Below the pieces are notes generated by a model. The model saw only the letters and a list, made by a program, of their open reading frames with translations, did not search any database and had not been told where the DNA came from. A DNA stretch of 64,000 nucleotides, from contig QPMI01000679.1 of assembly GCA_004431415.1 (NCBI GenBank), positions 62,001-126,000 on the forward strand, in the 5' to 3' direction. How positions within the stretch are numbered: the stretch's first letter is position 1; the number at the start of each line of letters is the position of its first letter. Positions 30,829-41,344 of the stretch are shown piece after piece. Origin of the DNA: Cyanophora paradoxa CCMP329. Taxonomy: Eukaryota > Plantae > Glaucophyta. Position numbers and translations under genes: made by a program.

Positions 30829-32040
30829 ATGCAGAAGGGCCACGTCCACGCCAACCACAAGTCGAAACCCGGCCACGGCCCGGATGGTCAGCTGTGCACG
30901 TGGGAAGACAAGAAGCACCATCAATTCACGTGCGTACGCGTACGGGGACGCCGGACGCGCGCGTCATCGATCGGCCGATCGGCCCCTCAGCCAGGCGGCA
31001 CGCGTACGTCGCACGCATCTGATCGGGAATGCAGGATTGTATGTAAGCCCGGAATGGCGCTGAAATACAAGGATGGCAAACTTGGCTTCGGGAACCTTCT
31101 TGTGAGCGATGCGGTTTACAAAAACTACCAGAAGGGCGAGTGCGTGATCTGAATGCCTGTGCGCGACGCGTCGCACCGACTCGCATACGCAGGACGTACA
31201 CTGACGAGGAGCTAAAGGGCGCATTCGGCACAAGCAACCTCGAGGAGGTCGCGAAGCAGATCCTGGAGAAAGGCGAGCTCAAATTATCGGCGGCGGAACA
31301 GAAGGAGAAAATTGAGAAGGTGAAGAAGGAGATCATCTCGCATCTTCACAAACACTTCCTGGACGTCCGGAGCAACGCCCCGCTGCCGGAGCGCCGCCTG
31401 GAGGAGGCCTTCGAGCAGCTGAAGGCGCGTACGACTGTGCCCGCGCCCTTTCCCGCAATAACTAATCGTAATCAGCAGATCAAGGTCGACCCCGACACGC
31501 CGTTCAGGGAACAGGCGAGCGCGTCCCGCTGCGATTCGCCCGCCCCGCTCTGAGCGCCCCCTCCCCCGCGCGCGCAGCTTACTCAGGTGGTCAAGGCGAT
31601 CAACCCGACGATGGCGATTGCCGAGCGCAAGATCGAGGGCACCCTCGTCGGTCCGCGCGCGAGCCTACCCGGCCCCGCGCCGCCTGCTCCGCTGACGCGC
31701 GCGCGCAGTGCCGAGCAAGTTTGTGTCGCAGGCGAAGACCATCGTCGCGAAGCACGCGGCCGTCGGCGCCTCCGAGTTCTCTGAGGCCGGCCTCACCATG
31801 GAGCTCAGCGTCCTCCCCGGGGAATTCGATCTCCTCGTGGGCGAGCTCCACAAGGTTATGAAGAACGACTTTGAGTGGACGGCCGCGGCCCCCGCGGGCG
31901 CGGGAGGCCACGAGGAGTCCGCCAAGGGCAAGGGCAAGGGCGGCAAGGGCAAGGAGCGGGCGGGGGGCGCGGCGGCGCACGCGGGGCACCCCAAGGGGGG
32001 GAAGGCGGCCGGCGACGAGCCCTCGACCTCCGCCGCCTAA
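30829..32040 (+). CDS. SBDS/Sdo1-family ribosome maturation protein (divergent)
   Basis: Spliced: FTIVCKPGMALKYKDGK...LVSDAVYKNYQKG...DEELKGAFGTSNLEEVAKQILEKGELKLSAAEQKEKIEKVKKEII...PLPERRLEEAF...IKVDP...LSVLPGEFD; all three SBDS domains are represented. Confidence 0.85.
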
Positions 32041-32386: not shown

Positions 32387-35300
32387 TCATGAGCCGCCGG
32401 CGAACAGCTCCGCCGGCGCCGCGAACAGCTCCAGGACGCGCGCGGCGGCCGCCTCGACGTCGGCGCCGGCGCCCCACAGCGCCGCGGGGAGGCTGACGGC
32501 GGATGATCATGAGGGGGCTACGGAGAAATTTTGGGGGGTACCGACCTTGAGTTCGAGAGCGGGGGCGGGAGCTGGAAGTCGGGGAGGAGGAGGGGCAGGA
32601 GGCGCGTGCGGCGGTTCTCGGCGAGGGCGAGGGCGTCGCGCAGCGGCCGCGCCGCCGCCGAGCGCGCCGAGAGGAGCGCCACGACGGCCCCCGCCGCCCC
32701 CACGGCCCCGCCAGGCCCGCCCCGCCCTCGGCCCCGGGCTCGCCCTCGACGACCACGCGCCGCCCCGCTGCCCGCAGCCGCCCCGCGAGCCGCCCCGCCG
32801 CCTCCGCGTGCGCCCCGCCGTGCACCACCACAAACTCTGGGCCCTCGGCCGCCGACGGCGCTACTCCGTTCGCCCTCGAGTCTGCCGCCTGCTTGAGAGC
32901 CACCCGTAGCGCTTCGTTCTCAGTCATCTCCAGCGGCTTCGAAGAGGGTTCGAATCAGGGCGGGATGGATTATTGCGAGCGCGGGGGCGGGCGCGGGGGC
33001 GCACGGAGAGGCCTTTGGCGTTGCGGGCTTCGGTCGAAGCGGCCGCCGCGATGAGCGCCCCCGCCGCGCCCTGGTCCCTGCCCGGCCGCGTGGGGCCGGG
33101 CCGGGACGGGGCAAGGCGGGCCGCCGCGCGTACCCCCGGGCGACGGCCCAGTGGAGGGGCGTGTTGCGGTCCTCCGTCGCGTCCGCCGCGTTCGGGTCCC
33201 TGCCGGCCCCCCTTAGCGCAGCCGGGGTACCGAAAAACAAGAGAGTGGAAGCCGCGCACGCTCCCGACGCGAGTAGGGCCTGGACGCAGGGGAGGGTACC
33301 CCAGCGGGCGGCGGCGTGGAGGGGGTAGTCCCCCTGGAAGCCTTTGTTCGGGTCGGCTCCTGCGCCCCGCGGCGCCGTCAGGCCGGCCGGGCCGGGCCGG
33401 GGCCGGGGCGGGCGGGGCGGGGCGGGCCCTTGGCGAGGAGGGCGCGGACGAGAGCGGCGCGGCCGGCGCGGGCGGCGACGTAGAGCGGCGTGCCCCCGTC
33501 CGACGCCCGGTCCACCTCGCACTGCGCCGCGCCGCCGCAGGCTCAGAATTCGAAGCTGATCGTGAAAAGAATGCTGAGGGCGGGCGGGCGTGCCTTTGGG
33601 TGTGCCAGGAGGCCTTCCACGACTCTGTCATCGCTCTCGCCCGGCGGCCCCGCGCAGAACAGCACCAGCGACCTGTCGGAGTACGGGATCGTCGGGGGAA
33701 GTGGGGTACGCGATCTATCTATCTTTGGGGGTACGCACGCGGCGATGCGCTCGGCGGTCTGGGGGCCCCCGAAGCCCGCCCCCCCTTTCTTTTTCTTTTG
33801 GGCTTCCTCTACCCCTGTAGCAGGGGCTGGGGCCGCGGCCGCGGCCGCGGCCGGCCCGGCCTGCTGATGCTCCTTCAGGGGCGGCGCCGGCGCCGCCTCG
33901 GCCCCGACCCCCTCCTCGCCCTCGCCCTCGCCCTCCTTCAGGATCTGAGCCAGCTTCTTGTTCGACTGCGTCGTTCAAAACGGGAGCGCGCGCTCGGTCA
34001 GCCGGACGGGCGGATGGGGAACGTTCTTTCGGAGCGGGAGCGGAGGAACGGTCTCCGCCTACCGCGCAGATGGTTCGGGACCTCCCCAGCCGCTCCTCCT
34101 CGCGCGCTGAATCAAGGAATCAAAGAGGAGTAATTATAACTTCCTAATTAGAAGCTTAAGAGGACGCACGCCCCTCGTAGGGCAGGTTGTCCAGCAGGAG
34201 CAATTCCTTCAGGTTGAAGTTCTTCCCCAGGGACGCGAGGAGGGCGTCCACCCCCTCCTCCCCCAGCCGGTTCGCGTTCAGGCTCACCCTACGTGCGTGA
34301 CGTCACTTAGGGGAAAGAGCGTCCCGACGTCCGACGCTCGGGGAGGAGCCAGCCAGCTAGCCAGCTAGCCAGGCAATAAGGGGGAAGAGCGCCCCGAAGC
34401 TCGGGGAGGAGCCAGAGGGCCAGAGCTCACTTACTTGGTTAGGGAGCGGTTCTTCTCGAGGGCGGCGGCGAGGAGCGCGCCGCAGTCGGCGGTGAGGCGG
34501 CACCTGCGAACGAAGTGGGCGGGCGGGCGGGCACCGGGGGGGGGGAAGGGAGGGGGGGGAAGGGAGGGGGGGAGGGGAGGGGGGGGAAGGGAGGGGGAGG
34601 GGGGGCACCTCGACATCGTCAGCCGCACCAGAGACGCGTTCTTTGCCTGCGAACGATGCGGGCGGAGTGGGCGGGCGCTCGGGCGGGCGCGGGCGCGTGT
34701 CGGCCCCTGGCGCTAGCTGTAGCACCCACGGGCCGGGCCGGGTCTAGGGGGGCGGGGAGGGGCCGGGGCCGGTCTGCCCCCACTCTCTCGGAAAGGGAGG
34801 GGAGCGGGTTCGAGCGGAGCCGATTCGATTTTTTGGAGCAGGTTCAAATGGCCGATGCTTAGGGGTACCCGGTTTGAACGGCGGCGGGGTACGCTACGCT
34901 ACGCACGAGGGCGGCGGCGAGGGCCTCGCAGCCGGCGAGGCCGACGCCGTTGCCGTCGAGGCGGAGGACCTCGAGCGCCGCGTTCGCCTCCAGGCCCCGC
35001 GCCAGCGCCGCGCAGCCCCGCGGCCCAATCCGGCAGTCCTGCAAGGGTGCCGCGGCCGGTCAAGGCGGGGCGAGGCGAGGCGGAAGCGTTATCCAAGGTT
35101 AAGCGAAGGCTAAGGCCGCGCCGAAGCTTTAGCGAAGGTCAAATTAAGGCGAGAGGCTGGCTTCAGCTTTGGACCGGGCCGGGGCCGGGGGCGCCGAGGC
35201 GCCGGCGTCCTCCGATCGAATCGAAGCGAAGGGGCGCATATATATGGCGCACCTGCAGGCCGAGGTACTTGAGGGAGGTGTTGGCGGCGAGGGCGGCGGC

Positions 35301-35796
35301 GAGGCGCGCCGCCCCGTCGTCCGCGAGCCGCGGGTTCGAGCCGAGGCTGATCTCCTTCCAGGGCACGGGGACCCTCTCGCCCGCCTGCAGGAGCTGCGCG
35401 AGCGCGCTGACGTCGGGGGGAGAGAGGCCCTTTGACTCCAGGTTAAGCACGCCCTGCGTGCGTGCGTGCGGGGCGGCCGCGGACCGGACCGGCCGCGTCA
35501 GCGCTAGCTCGCTGGCTGGATGCGCTTGCGGCGGAGCTAAGCAGAGTCATTAGCTAGGCTCTCGTGACGGACGATGGCGCGTGTGGTGTGCGCGCCGGCG
35601 GTTACGAGGGACCGGAACGCGCGCGCCGCATTTGGACACGGGCGGGCGGGCGGCCGCGGGCGGGCACGTTGGCCGTGCGCACCTTCGAGAGCGCTCCCTG
35701 CGCGAAGCCAAGCCGCTTCTCGAGTGCTTCCACCGTGGGCGGGGGCGCCTCACGGACGCGCCCCTGCAGGAAGGAAAGCGCCGGCGGGAGCGCCAT
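32387..35796 (-). CDS. RNI-like LRR + ankyrin + degenerate TIR-like domain protein (copy A, lacks the catalytic TIR)
   Basis: LRR exons (LGSNPRLADDGAARLAAALAANTSLKYLGLQ...), ANK (GTPLYVAA, DYPLHAAA, NTPLHWAV), then LKQAADSR..PEFVVVHG..AVVALLSARS..LLPLLL. One apparent 1-nt frameshift near 32705; start uncertain. Confidence 0.75.
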
Positions 35797-36054
35797 TCGC
35801 GCCCGTTCGGCCCCCAGCTGGCAGCTGCTCTATTGTACCTTCTGCTAGCGCTGCAGCGAGGACTGGGAAGCGGGCCTGAGGCGGGCCACTCAGACGGCGG
35901 CTCACGGGGTACGCGTTCAACTCAGCGTCCCAGACCTGAACGACGGCGTGCACGAGGTTCGCGATTCTACGGCGGACGGAAACAAGGGATCTTGTCAGCT
36001 TGATAAGTTGCAAGCACCAGCGCCGCCTCCCAAGCGCGGCTGGAAGGCTCAACT

Positions 36055-36091
36055 GCTGCTGGAGCACAAGGCGACGGTCTGGGCGGAGGTC
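36055..36091 (+). repeat. 37-bp fragment of the LRR exon of copy B within the intergenic spacer
   Basis: gctgctggagcacaaggcgacggtctgggcggaggtc matches 36603-36639 at 35 of 37 positions. Confidence 0.75.
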
Positions 36092-36375
36092 CAAAGCTGT
36101 CGGGCACTGTCGGCACTTCCAGCCTTCCTCCCAAGTTCGACCGCACCAGGCTCGGAGCTCGAGGCTCAACTTCTGTGGCCGCCACGCTAGCTTCGCCGTC
36201 GGCGGCAGCGCAGCTGCCTGGAAGGGAGGCGCGTGCGTCCTATTGCTCCCAGAAACTTACCTGCTCGGAGGTCGAGTGCGACGGTTTAGCTGGCTTCTCC
36301 GTCAGCAGCAGCGACCGCGGGGACGCGTACGTAGAGACGGCGGATATGTAGCGTGCGGCGCCCGTCCGAGCATCC

Positions 36376-39300
36376 ATGGCCTCGCGGGTGGCACGCGCCC
36401 GCAGGGCGTCGTCTCAGCCCGAGAGCCCGCTCGCCGCCTTCGAGCAGAAGCTCAAGTTCGCCCCCGGGGCGCTCAGTAAGGCATGAGCGTACACGCGCCT
36501 GCGCCCGCCGCACGGCCGGACAGCTGAGCCGCGGCGGCCGCAGAACGTGGCGAACCTCGAGGGCCGCTCGCTTGGCCCGCAGGACGCGGCGTCGATCGGG
36601 GCGCTGCTGGAGCACAAGGCGACACTCTGGGCGGAGGTCACGCTCGCCTCCAACCCGCGGCTGGGCGACGACGGCGCCGTCAAGATCGCGGGCGGCCTCT
36701 CCGTCAACCGAACAGTGCGGTACCTCGGCCTGCAGAACTGCGAGATCGGGCCGGCGGGGTGCCGCGCCCTCGCGCTGGGCCTCGAGGCGAACGGCACGCT
36801 GGAGACGCTGCGGCTCGACGAGAACCCGATCGGCTTCGAGGGCGCCTCGGCGCTTGCCGCCATGCTCGTGCGCCCACCCCCCCCCCATCCCTTCCCCCCC
36901 CCCCCACCCCACCTTCTCACTTCGTTCGCAGACGAAGAACGTCACGCTGCTGCGGCTCACGCTCTTTCAGTGCCGCTTGAACGCCGACTGCGGGAAGGTC
37001 CTCGCGTCCGCCCTCGAGCGCAACTCGACCCTCATCTCGTTCGTACCCCGCGGGCCCCGCCGGGCTAGCCGCCGCAGGCTCGACGTACCCCCCTAACTCC
37101 ACCGACCGCAGGCTCAACGTGTGCGACAACAGGCTCGCCGAGGCGGGGGTCGACGCCATCGGTGCCCCGCGCCCCGCACCCCCCCCTTACCCCCTCCCCC
37201 CCCCGCCCCCCTCCCCTCCCTCCCTCCCTCCCTCCCCGCTAGAGGCGGCTAGAAGGGCTCGCCCCGCTACGCCACGCCTCGGGGGAGGGCCCGGCCTGCG
37301 CCCCCCCCCCTCCCCCCCCTCCCCCCCCTCCCCCCCCCTCGCACCCCCTTCCCCCGCCCCCCCCCTCCCGCACTCCGCGCCCCGCTCCCCGCCCCGCTCC
37401 GCCCCGCCCGCCCACGTCCCGCTACCCCCTCCGCCCCCCCCCCCCCCCCCGCCCCCCGCGTTCGATCGCCGACTCGCCGGGGGCGCGCAGTGGGCGCCCT
37501 GAAGGCGAACTTCACGCTCGTCGAGCTCGAGATGCGCAACAACGTCCCCGGGCCCTGTGAGCGCGCGCGCAGCCCGCTCGCGGCCCCGCCTCTATCTATC
37601 TCTCAATCTAGATCTATCCCATCTTCTTCGATCGTGAGCCCCTTCGCGCGCCTCCTCACGCGGCCGCGCGGCCTGCAGGGCGCAAGCCGACGAAGGAGGA
37701 GAAGGAGTTCGCGGCGCAGCGGCGCGAGGCCGCCCAGAAGCTCCTCGAGGCGCGCTCACCTGAGTCTCATGGATCTATTTATAGCTATCGTTCGCTGTAG
37801 GGCCGCCCGCGCCTGGCCTATGCATCCGATCGATCTCGCCCGCGCTCACCTGAGCTCTGAACTTTTCTTTCGCCGTAGTCGAACATGGCGATCGCCCAGA
37901 TTCTCACGGGCGGCGACGCATCGGGCCTGACCCGCGCGGCCGCCGACAAGGGCGCCGCCTTCACCGCCGAGCGCATCGCCCGCAGCCTCGAGTTCTTCTG
38001 CGGTACCCCCCCCCCGAGATCTTCTGTACCCCCCCTCTAACCTCTTCCTGTAGGAGCCGGTGCGCCCGAAAACCCCCGACTCGTCGAGGGCCTCCTAGCC
38101 CACCCGAAGGTCCGCCCGCCCGCCCTCAGCATTCCTTCCAGATTCGATGTCTGAGCTCGCGGCGGCCCGGCGCAGTGCGAGGTGGACCGGGCGTCGGACG
38201 GGGGCACGCCTCTCTACGTCGCCGCCCGCGCCGGCCGCGCCGCCCTCGTCCGCGCCCTCCTCGCCAAGGGCCCGCCCCGCCCGCCCCGGCCCCGCCCCGC
38301 CCCGGCCCGGCCCGGCCCGGCCTGACGGCGCCGCGGGGCGCAGGGGCCAACCCGAACAAGGGCTTCCAGGGGGACTTCCCCCTCCACGCCGCCGCCCGCT
38401 GGGGTACCCCCGAGGTCGTCAGCGCGCTCCTGGAGGCCGGGGCCTCCCAGGCGGCCGAGTCGGTCGAGGGGGGGGTTCGACCCCTCCACGTCGCGGCCGA
38501 GCTGGGGAGGGAGGCGGAGCTGGCGGCGCTGGTGGCGAAGGCCGGACCCGGGGAGCTGGACGCCAGGAGCCGGGCCGGGCGGACGGCGCTGAGCCTGGCC
38601 GTCGCCGCCGGCTCGCTCGCATGCGTCCGAGCGCTTCTGGAGGGCGGAGCGTGCGCGGGTTCGATTCTCTTCCGTTCCTCTTCTCTTGGATTGAGCGGCC
38701 CGGCAGGGACCCGAACGCGGCGGACGCGACGGAGGACCGAAACACGCCCCTCCACTGGGCCGTCGCCCGGGGGTACGCGCGCCAGCCCGCCTTGCCCCGC
38801 CCCGGCCCCGGCCCGGCCCCACGCGGCCGGGCAGGGACCAGGGCGTGGGGGAGGCGCTGATCGCGGCGGCCGCCTCGACCGAAGCCCGCAACGCCAAAGG
38901 CCTCTCCGTCCGCCCCCGCCCGGCCCGCAATTAATCCATCCCGCTCTGATTCGAACCCGCTTCGAAGCCTCTGGAGATGACGGACAGCGAGAAGCTTCGG
39001 TTTGCGCTAAAGCAGGCGGCCGGTTCCCGTGACGTCATGATCTCGTACAGGTCCCGCCCCCTCCCCTCTCTTTCTTCCTTTCCTCACTCTAATATGGAAA
39101 GCAGCCACCAGCCGGCGGAGGTGGCCGCCTTCGCTCGGGCGCTGCGGGACGCGCTTCAAGCGCAGCGCATCACCGTTTGGCTCGACGAGGCGCGCCCGCG
39201 CCCGCGGCAATGCTAAGGCCGCTTAGGCTAAGAAGGGTACGCTTCGCAGATGGCGCCGAGCGGGATCGAGGCCGGCACGGAGTGGCGCAGCCGCATCGCA

Positions 39301-40725
39301 CAAGGTGAACGGGCCCTCTAGATTCTCCCCGCCGAAATCAGAGGAGAGGGGAGCTGACGCTGCCAGGCGCGCCTGCATGCAGGGATTGACGGGGCGGCTG
39401 CGGTCGTATTCATCGCCTCGGAGCTCAGCGTCGCCTCCGACTGGTGCCGCAAGGTTTGCTCGTACCCCCGCCCCTGTGAATCGAGTACGTACCCCCTGAA
39501 GGCTGGTGGGCCGCGCAGGAGCTTGCGTACGCGCGGCAGACGGAGACGGCGATCTTCCCCGTCTGGCGCGAGAAGGCGCGCTTCCCCCCCCACTCCCACT
39601 CCCCCCCCCCCTTTCCCCCCCTCCGCCCCCTTCTCGGCTCGCTGAGCAAGGAGTTGGCCCCCCTCCCCCGCCCCGCCCTCCCCCCCGCTTCTCCCCCCCT
39701 CACTCCACCCCCTCCCCCCTCCCCCCCCGCCCCCCCCTCGGCTCGCTGAAGCGCGGACCCCCCTCCGGGCAGGTGCCGCTGGACGCCGAGCTCGAGGCCA
39801 TGCTCTTCTCCCGCCAGGCGAGCCAGCGAGCCAGCGAGCGAGCGAGCGCGTAGACTAATTATAAGAAGAGAGGCCTAACGGGCTTAAGAAGCTCAAGTAG
39901 AGTAGAAGTAGAAGGCGCGCACGAGCTTAAGAGGCCCTAAATAGCTCAAGGCGCCGGCTCCCCCTCCCCCCCCCTCCTGAACTCCTCGGGACTTCGTTCG
40001 CAGTTCGTGGACTTCTCGGGGGCGCGGCCGGGCGACGCCGCCTCGTTCGCGGCGCCCCTCGCCGCCCTCGCGTCGGGCCTCCGCGACGCCCTCTTCGCCC
40101 GCCGCGGGCCCAGGACGGGGCCGGGGCCCGTCAAGCAGGAGGAGGAGGCGCCTGCTTCTTCTACTTCTGCCTCGGGGCCGCCGCCGGCGGTCGGGGGCCC
40201 GGAGTTTGTGGTGGTGCATGGCGGGGCGCACGCGGAGGCGGCGGGGCGGCTCGCGGGGCGGCTGCGGGCGGCGGGGCGGCGCGTGGTCGTGGAGGGCGAG
40301 CCGGGGCCGAGGGCGGGGCGGGCCTGGCGGGGCCGTGGGGGCGGCGGGGGCCGTCGTGGCGCTCCTCTCGGCGCGCTCGGCGGCGGCGCGGCCGCTGCGC
40401 GACGCCCTCGCCCTCGCCGAGAACCGCCGCACGCGCCTCCTGCCCCTCCTCCTCCCCGACTTCCAGCTCCCGCCCGCCCTCGCCTACAGGTCCACTTTCA
40501 TTTCGCTCCGTACCCCCCTTCTCCGATCTCTGACGACGCCGTACCCCCCGCAGCTTCAGCAACTCGCTGCTGGTGGGGTTTGCCGAGAACTGCGGCCTCG
40601 ACGCGGCGGCGGGGCACGTCCTCTCGCAGATGCAGGGCGCCCCGGGGGCCCCGGGGCCCCCTTCGAATTCCGGGCCTACCGGGCCCGGCGATCACGGGAA
40701 GCCCGAATTCGAAGGCGCCGGCTAG
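36376..40725 (+). CDS. RNI-like LRR + ankyrin + TIR + degenerate TIR-like domain protein (copy B)
   Basis: LRRs, about 5-6 ANK repeats, then a spliced TIR: DVMISYSH..FARALRDALQAQRITVWLDE..IEAGTEWRSRIAQGIDGAAAVVFIASELSVASDWCRKELAYA..IFPVW..QFVDFS. A second TIR-like domain follows, with apparent homopolymer frameshifts near 40300-40335. Confidence 0.82.
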
Positions 40726-41344
40726 CATGCAGTGAGATGCATACGTAGTTCTAGTTAGCCTGTTGTAGTCTAATTTCTGTTATTACACGCACCGTAATGG
40801 CACCTCACACCTCGCACCGTACCTCGAGCCATGGCCAGCGCGCGCTCGAGCTAGCGCTAGCGCGCGCTCGAGCTCGAGCTCACGCGTACGCGTTCAGCGG
40901 CCGCGCGCGGGTCCGGCAGCTGCGCCTCCGGGATCCAAACCACATGCATATGCCGCGCGCAGTGCATGGCCAGCTGCCGAAGTGCGTCGACGTCGCGCGC
41001 GCGCGGCGCCAGCCGCAGCGCTAGCGGCTCGCAGCAGCTTCTCTAGATCTTGAAGAGCGTCAGCGGCTCGCAGCGCCAGCTGCAGCGGCTCTCAACTCTA
41101 TCATGATCAGCTTCTCTTGAAGAGCGTCGAGCCAGCTGCAGGGCCTGACATTGCTGGCCTATTCCAGTACCCGGTCGCCAGCGCTCGCCGCTCGCCGCTC
41201 GCCGCTCGCGGCCGCTCAGCTGCGGCCAGCAGCCACAGGCAACAGCAGCTTGCCAACTCGCCGACCAGGCTAGATCGGCGTAGTTCGCCCACGCGCCCGG
41301 CGACTCAAATCGCAGCGATCCCCAGACACCTGCAAATTCCACCG

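Follow-up and report, generated by a model that had tools for sequence, protein, structure and literature searches.

Genes A and B form a head-to-head pair of paralogs at positions 32387 to 40725 of a 64,000-nucleotide (nt) stretch of the genome of the glaucophyte alga Cyanophora paradoxa CCMP329 (GenBank contig QPMI01000679.1, positions 62,001 to 126,000 of the forward strand). This whole stretch is referred to here as the window, and all positions are counted from its first letter. Gene B codes for a leucine-rich repeat (LRR) module, an ankyrin stack, and a TIR domain (TIR1) that carries a catalytic-type glutamate motif. We lean, somewhat beyond an even balance, toward the view that the pairing is incidental and that B is a stand-alone receptor-like enzyme; its NADase activity, its immune role, and any interaction between the A and B products are inferred. 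The gene structures, their transcription and splicing, the domain content, the deletions, and the frame breaks, by contrast, are shown directly by the sequence and RNA data.

35921-40725, plus strand: gene B, from the start of the RNA contig to the stop codon in the frame chosen by an earlier sequence-only reading of this DNA; 20 exons
35901-32387, minus strand: gene A, from the end of the RNA contig to the stop codon in the frame of that reading

On this explanation, the pair would be an inverted duplicate that arose by birth-and-death turnover within a large family of cytosolic LRR-TIR receptor-like genes lacking a nucleotide-binding (NB) domain. B would be the intact member, in which a TIR_2-class domain with the complete SxWCxxE motif follows the RNI-type LRRs and the ankyrin stack. 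Its LRR module would probably bind a ligand or a partner, and the repeat domains would hold TIR1 from self-association. Binding of a trigger to the LRRs would cluster B, and the clustered TIR domains might then assemble and cleave NAD+, leading to a signal or to NAD+ depletion, as in SARM1, plant TIRs, and Thoeris. This mechanism is extrapolated from the motif and from what is established for these three systems. A would be a derivative, still expressed and correctly spliced, from which in-frame deletions removed TIR1 and two ankyrin repeats, with a degenerate C-terminal TIR-like module as its only remaining TIR part. A may act on B as a competitor or decoy, by way of the ankyrin and TIR-like segments common to both, but its chances of being an independent or decaying paralog are at least as high.

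TIR1 and the domain plan of the two proteins

The Pfam, PDB, and protein database searches were all run exon by exon, and joined translations were used for checks of the open reading frames (ORFs) and for the comparisons of A with B and of TIR1 with the TIR-like module. The modules upstream of the C-terminal part are as follows.

39031-40097, plus strand: TIR1 of B, exons 13 to 19 (DVMISYSH ... SDWCRKELAYA ... FVDFSG ... LASGLRDAL)
39519-39521, plus strand: codon for the Glu of SxWCxxE, which opens exon 17 and follows the intron at 39454-39518
36544-37556, plus strand: LRR module of B, exons 2 to 5 (Pfam LRR_6, 42.4 bits, E value 4.4e-11)
38054-39030, plus strand: ankyrin module of B (Pfam Ank_2, 48.8 bits, E value 1e-12; Ank, 9e-12)
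34170-35453, minus strand: LRR module of A, exons 2 to 5 (Pfam LRR_6, 25.6 bits, E value 1e-5)
32937-33672, minus strand: ankyrin module of A (Pfam Ank, 30.7 bits, E value 3e-7)

Spliced TIR1 reads DVMISYSHQPAEV...ITVWLDE...AAAVVFIASELSVASDWCRKELAYARQTETAIFPVWREK...FVDFSG and has the β-A, BB-loop Gly, and SxWCxxE(L) motifs of TIR_2. The Glu of the last motif sits where NADase TIRs have their catalytic residue. The sequence-only reading had described ISYSH and SDWCRKE in this domain, with the Glu at 39519-39521, and the RNA bears this out: the splices that form the ISY/SH and SDWCRK/ELAYA joints are both RNA-consistent. The catalytic-type Glu motif is thus created by an RNA-supported splice. 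Against the Pfam TIR_2 profile (PF13676; gathering score, 28 bits), TIR1 gives two co-linear matches, one of 17.7 bits (profile positions 4 to 36) and one of 14.4 bits (positions 41 to 71); they sum roughly to 32 bits, and each alone falls below the cut-off. The PDB sequence search with exons 13 and 14 returned a sole match, the bacterial TIR protein 3H16, with an E value of 1 that is not significant alone, and other single TIR1 exons had no match in PDB. PADLOC gave only weak matches, to uncharacterised models. TIR1 is a probable NAD-cleaving TIR domain, and A is without any TIR that carries the catalytic-type Glu motif.

The B protein consists, in this order, of the LRR module, a linker, the ankyrin module, TIR1, another linker, and the C-terminal TIR-like module. 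Its LRR module contains about 6.5 (six to seven) RNI-type repeats of 28 amino acids (aa), and its ankyrin module can be parsed into a cap, five complete repeats, and half a repeat at the C terminus. A follows the same plan minus two deletions, with about 55% aa identity to B in the LRR module. LRRs and ankyrin repeats are here combined in a single protein. The first deletion removed 69 aa of the ankyrin module (two repeats, equivalent to B 38410-38615), and the second removed about 175 aa comprising TIR1 and the linker, which joined mid-exon 13 to mid-exon 19. Both losses are in frame, as the sequence-only reading had proposed.

LRR, linker, ankyrin, and TIR segments account for both ORFs. No exon or long open frame of A or B had a Pfam match to NB-ARC or NACHT, and no SAM domain, coiled coil, or other domain turned up in the exons of either gene. 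The claim that neither copy has an NB domain therefore stands over all exons, each searched separately against Pfam, and the unusual architecture, LRR-ankyrin-TIR without such a domain, is real. The domains of A are a subset of those of B, with no integrated decoy or extra domain. The frames that were read contain no CaaX tail, membrane segment, or signal peptide; the N terminus is not hydrophobic, and the maximum 19-residue hydropathy, 1.76, falls in an ankyrin helix. B is predicted from these features to be a soluble protein.

A short stretch of LRR exon 2 of A (35283-35312) matches 9 to 12 other RNA contigs per run at 95% identity or more, and these contigs then diverge. The pair accordingly belongs to a large expressed family that shares an LRR cassette. 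The 64-kb window contains no third copy.

Transcripts and gene models

A and B are inverted paralogs. Comparison of the region with itself pairs 32557-32860 of A with 40481-40179 of B (96.7%), 32884-33294 with 39020-38616 (82%), and 33294-33625 with 38409-38078 (89%), with the LRR exons joined by weaker matches; B 38410-38615 and 39021-40178 have no equivalent in A. The start codons at 35796 (A) and 36376 (B) are separated by 579 bp, which agrees with the spacer of about 580 bp reported for this head-to-head pair, and the gene limits given earlier, with stops at 40723-40725 (B) and 32387-32389 (A), also agree with ours.

Contigs of four public runs, X1, X2, X4 (two studies), and X8, were compared with positions 34750-40749. 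X8 consists of unspliced DNA contigs, and its record 16 crosses the junction between A and B (34750-36881). The contigs of X1, X2, and X4 have GT/GC-AG joints and therefore derive from RNA; both genes are transcribed and spliced in all three.

35902-35920, no strand: gap between the divergent transcripts, bounded by RNA contig ends

The RNA contigs of A end at 35901 or 35888, and those of B begin at 35921, 35930, or 35935. The divergent 5' ends are thus about 20 to 50 nt apart, and the closest pair, with its gap of about 20 nt, implies a very tight bidirectional promoter region. The 5' untranslated region (5'UTR) is 455 nt long in B, where the coding sequence starts at 36376, and 105 nt long in A, where it starts at 35796. 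In neither RNA-defined 5'UTR does an earlier ATG open a reading frame: the A leader has no upstream ATG, and the B leader has only a one-codon ATG-stop ahead of the start. The B transcript extends beyond 40749. B also contains, at 36055-36091 of its 5'UTR, a 37-nt copy (94.6% identical) of a part of its own LRR exon 2 (36603-36639; LLEHKATxWAEV), which probably represents a relic of a duplicated first repeat.

Exons 1 to 14 of B are fixed by listed RNA joints, and the later TIR1 exons were derived from exact length accounting of contigs of 786 nt and 791 nt together with canonical splice sites. The resulting model has an unbroken frame of 714 codons, from the ATG at 36376 to 40306, and GT/GC-AG splice sites throughout. 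For A, record 12 of X4 (1155 nt) is spliced as 35901-35682/35452-35252/35037-34906 and onward. The three 5' exons and the joint between exons 10 and 11 are seen directly in RNA with A-specific letters; the remaining exons were built by homology to B plus canonical splice sites. This gives an open frame of 531 codons from the ATG at 35796, with 13 correctly spliced introns.

The lengths of the contigs provide a check on both models. With k = 31, the A model places the end of the last A-unique 31-mer at nt 1155, which is how long X4 record 12 is. For B the corresponding value is nt 1385, which equals the length of X1 record 2; the B model also predicts exactly the 786-nt unitig length and the contig end at 40249. 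These exact predictions show that both models are correct to the base over those stretches. The unitigs branch where A and B share 31-mers, so both mRNAs were present in the same samples. The co-expression suggested from the sequence is therefore observed in X1, X2, and X4, and the concern that A might be untranscribed falls away, as it is transcribed and correctly spliced in the RNA runs.

The introns of the two genes display several peculiarities. GC instead of GT donors are found in 6 of the 19 introns of B (at 36481, 37750, 38270, 39190, 39576, and 39818), and those at 36481, 37750, and 39190 are confirmed by listed RNA joints. Most introns of B are 51 to 74 nt long. An A-specific intron of 105 nt (34504-34608, minus strand) splits the exon equivalent to exon 3 of B, and a B-specific intron of 329 nt (37162-37490, plus strand) is not found in A; both are spliced in RNA, start with GTGCCCC, and are rich in (CCCCTCCC)n. 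The GTGCC with which the A-specific intron starts recurs where the next exon begins, which resembles a target-site duplication. To judge from these features, the paralog-specific introns look like intron gain after the duplication. The intron between exons 7 and 8 of A (33673-33738) lies about nine codons away from its counterpart in B (38003-38053).

Divergence of the copies and the C-terminal module

Nei-Gojobori estimates of synonymous divergence (dS) and of the ratio of nonsynonymous to synonymous divergence (dN/dS), each from the two sequences A and B, differ along the genes.

LRR: dS 0.67, dN/dS 0.66
Ankyrin: dS 0.26, dN/dS 0.26
N-terminal part of the TIR-like module: dS 0.15, dN/dS 0.16, followed by 160 identical bases

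The decrease in dS toward the 3' end and the identical tract suggest an older duplication with 3' gene conversion. The ankyrin values indicate purifying selection on this part in at least one copy and probably in both, and, taken with the in-frame deletions, the ankyrin dN/dS of 0.26 argues that A was under selection. The LRR halves evolve loosely, in a way that, with two sequences, fits diversifying selection and relaxation alike.

The C-terminal modules and the zones in which their reading frame is broken are located as follows.

40199-40725, plus strand: degenerate C-terminal TIR-like module of B (TIR_2, E value about 0.1, profile positions 51 to 98; intron at 40490-40553)
32387-32840, minus strand: degenerate C-terminal TIR-like module of A, identical to B over B 40312-40472
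40301-40340, plus strand: frame-break zone of B, with two required single-base shifts that fall in runs of C and G
32698-32738, minus strand: frame-break zone of A, where one shift is needed; CCC in A where B has CC

In B, the frame with ..GPEFVVVHGG..RRVVVEGEPG runs to 40306, and the half that carries AVVALLSARSAAARPLRDALALAENRRTRLLPLLLPDF (the PLRDALALA half) is read in a different frame, starting at about 40341. Beyond the intron at 40490-40553, whose joint (40489>40554) was deduced from a 27-nt unaligned contig head, the module extends as far as the stop codon at 40723-40725. Compared with B, A has an extra C at 40301 (B numbering) and thus needs one shift where B needs two. The two genes are identical over B 40312-40472 (160 nt) and share the break tract; the last exon of A (32492-32387) has diverged from B. 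The second TIR-like domain proposed by the sequence-only reading is therefore present as a module but does not form one continuous frame with the preceding sequence in either assembled copy. Its reading of Ala in place of the TIR1 Glu was accurate, as the C-terminal module reads ARPLRDALALA. As for its question of whether A is truly frameshifted, A is shifted in the C-terminal TIR-like part as assembled, but B is likewise, and the tract is a G/C homopolymer.

A GT/GC-AG intron bridging 40301-40340 was considered and rejected: the sole AG is at 40310-40311, and there is no in-phase donor at least 45 nt upstream beyond the RNA-contiguous stretch, which ends at 40249.

The verified coding sequence has GC fractions of 0.74/0.54/0.93 at codon positions 1, 2, and 3. 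The frame of the sequence-only reading gives 0.88/0.57/1.00 over 40341-40489 and 0.73/0.59/0.88 in the last exon of B, whereas the read-through frame gives 1.00/0.86/0.57. The diverged last exon of A keeps the coding signature in the TIR-like frame (0.88/0.62/0.97). This signature shows that, in both copies, the frame of the sequence-only reading is the one in which the module evolved as a coding sequence. The breaks are either a very recent frameshift spread by gene conversion or a homopolymer error of the assembly. No contig with an indel at the break zones is listed, though contig coverage of the spot cannot be shown. At a C run in an intron (39965), the 2012 DNA run X8 has one C more than the window. 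This mismatch shows that homopolymer lengths in the assembly, or between strains, are not fully reliable, which bears on 40301-40340 as well.

As assembled, B is 839 aa and A 626 aa long, each with an out-of-frame tail of about 100 to 125 aa. The assignment of the C-terminal module to the TIR family is weak. It scores 13.2 to 13.5 bits against Pfam TIR_2 (E value about 0.1). Its C-terminal half has a 68-aa ungapped match to TIR1 (z = 3.4), which was reached in 4 of 500 shuffles, and the N-terminal part matches TIR1 no better than shuffles do (z = -0.7).

Competing readings, known systems, and the locus

Several observations weigh against B as a stand-alone enzyme. TIR1 was scored only exon by exon, with single-exon TIR_2 matches below threshold. 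A word-based protein search with exon 19 of B, which comprises the end of TIR1, the linker, and the start of the TIR-like module, found no relatives, with full-length proteins outside its length window. B has no NB, SAM, or coiled-coil oligomerisation domain that would assemble TIR1. Finally, genuine out-of-frame tails would mean that neither gene produces the shared C-terminal module; TIR1 is unaffected, because it lies upstream of the break. The likelihoods that we attach to this reading and to those below overlap in part and do not sum to one.

One alternative, to which we give about a third of the credence of the favored reading, is a genuine two-component receptor whose genes are jointly regulated by a single bidirectional promoter and in which B would be the NAD-cleaving executor and the TIR1-less A, bound to B through the shared ankyrin and TIR-like modules, a sensor or inhibitor. 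The 5' ends about 20 nt apart and the similar contig depth of both mRNAs in all three RNA runs are consistent with it, as are the in-frame nature of both deletions of A, its intact ORF and splicing, and the C-terminal TIR-like tract kept near-identical by gene conversion while the LRRs diverged. However, inverted duplication alone yields all these features with no need for functional coupling: the head-to-head layout and the co-expression would follow from the duplication itself, and the data are accounted for no less well by inverted duplication and degradation of one copy than by a sensor/executor pair. Moreover, A carries neither an integrated decoy nor a novel domain, the supposed contact module is frame-broken in both assembled copies, and the LRR divergence between two sequences is indistinguishable from relaxed constraint. 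In its most specific form, an NB-independent two-component TIR receptor in which A would control the NAD-cleaving B via the ankyrin part and the TIR module homogenised by gene conversion, this scheme appears less likely still.

Equally improbable as the general two-component scheme is that A, perhaps along with the C-terminal part of B, is a transcribed, decaying pseudogene, so that only the LRR-ankyrin-TIR1 part of B would matter. A has indeed lost the sole catalytic-type TIR, both copies have frame breaks (32698-32738 and 40301-40340) for which no contig with an indel is listed, and the LRR dN/dS is 0.66. Yet A retains 531 open codons across 13 correctly spliced introns, the ankyrin dN/dS is low (0.26), the diverged last exon of A preserves the coding GC3 signature in the TIR-like frame, and the breaks fall in C and G runs and may be errors, the assembly being at variance with the DNA run at 39965. 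The weakest alternative, a non-immune role, with the TIR working in ordinary signalling through protein interaction or NAD metabolism, agrees with the expression of both genes in ordinary culture RNA runs and with the housekeeping flank (SBDS) but is rather improbable for LRRs combined with a catalytic-Glu TIR in a large, fast-evolving family with birth-and-death features, which, from what is established for TLRs, TNLs, SARM1, and Thoeris, are typical of immune-type receptors.

Like the plant paired TIR-NLRs of the RPS4/RRS1 type, A and B are arranged head to head with closely spaced divergent starts, both come from one receptor family, and one partner has a signalling-competent TIR (predicted for B) that the other does not. 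Unlike RPS4/RRS1, they lack NB-ARC and any other STAND ATPase, their domains run in the opposite order, with LRRs first, the TIR last, and ankyrin repeats in between, and the weaker partner A has lost a domain instead of gaining an integrated decoy. B resembles SARM1, an ARM-SAM-SAM-TIR NADase, in having N-terminal solenoid repeats followed by a TIR_2-class domain with a catalytic-type Glu, in its predicted solubility, and in the absence of an NB domain. The tandem SAM domains of SARM1 drive octamer formation. B has none, carries LRRs and ankyrin repeats instead of ARM repeats, and has a second, degenerate TIR-like module after TIR1.

In animal Toll-like receptors, as in B, the LRRs are N-terminal and the TIR is C-terminal. 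In contrast to these receptors, B has no signal peptide or membrane helix, its LRRs are of the cytosolic RNI/NLR type (LRR_6), and TIR1 retains the enzyme-type Glu motif. In its TIR_2-type sequence, TIR1 resembles bacterial TIR_2 proteins, such as Thoeris ThsB and PdTIR (3H16); its PDB match to Paracoccus 3H16 (E = 1) is not significant alone. Unlike these, B is eukaryotic and intron-rich, with seven TIR1 exons, and is fused to LRRs and ankyrin repeats; unlike in Thoeris, there is no ThsA-like partner near A and B.

NAD+-cleaving TIR domains are immune executors in bacteria, plants, and animals. To our knowledge, almost nothing is known about the use of TIRs in early-branching photosynthetic eukaryotes, and a literature search found no relevant paper on TIR, LRR, or ankyrin proteins of Cyanophora or other glaucophytes. 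An expressed, soluble LRR-ankyrin-TIR protein without NB or SAM domains raises the question of how a TIR enzyme might be switched on without such scaffolds, and the adjacent, TIR1-less paralog A offers a natural test of pairing. If the two-component scheme were true, the pair would be the protist counterpart of the paired NLRs of plants, assembled from other components.

The pair is set among ordinary, unrelated genes, and this window contains no receptor cluster. The downstream neighbor codes for an acidic protein with no significant Pfam domain. Just upstream of the 3' end of A, an exon of the SBDS ribosome-maturation gene is found at 31140-31553 on the plus strand (Pfam SBDS_N, E value 2.7e-7).

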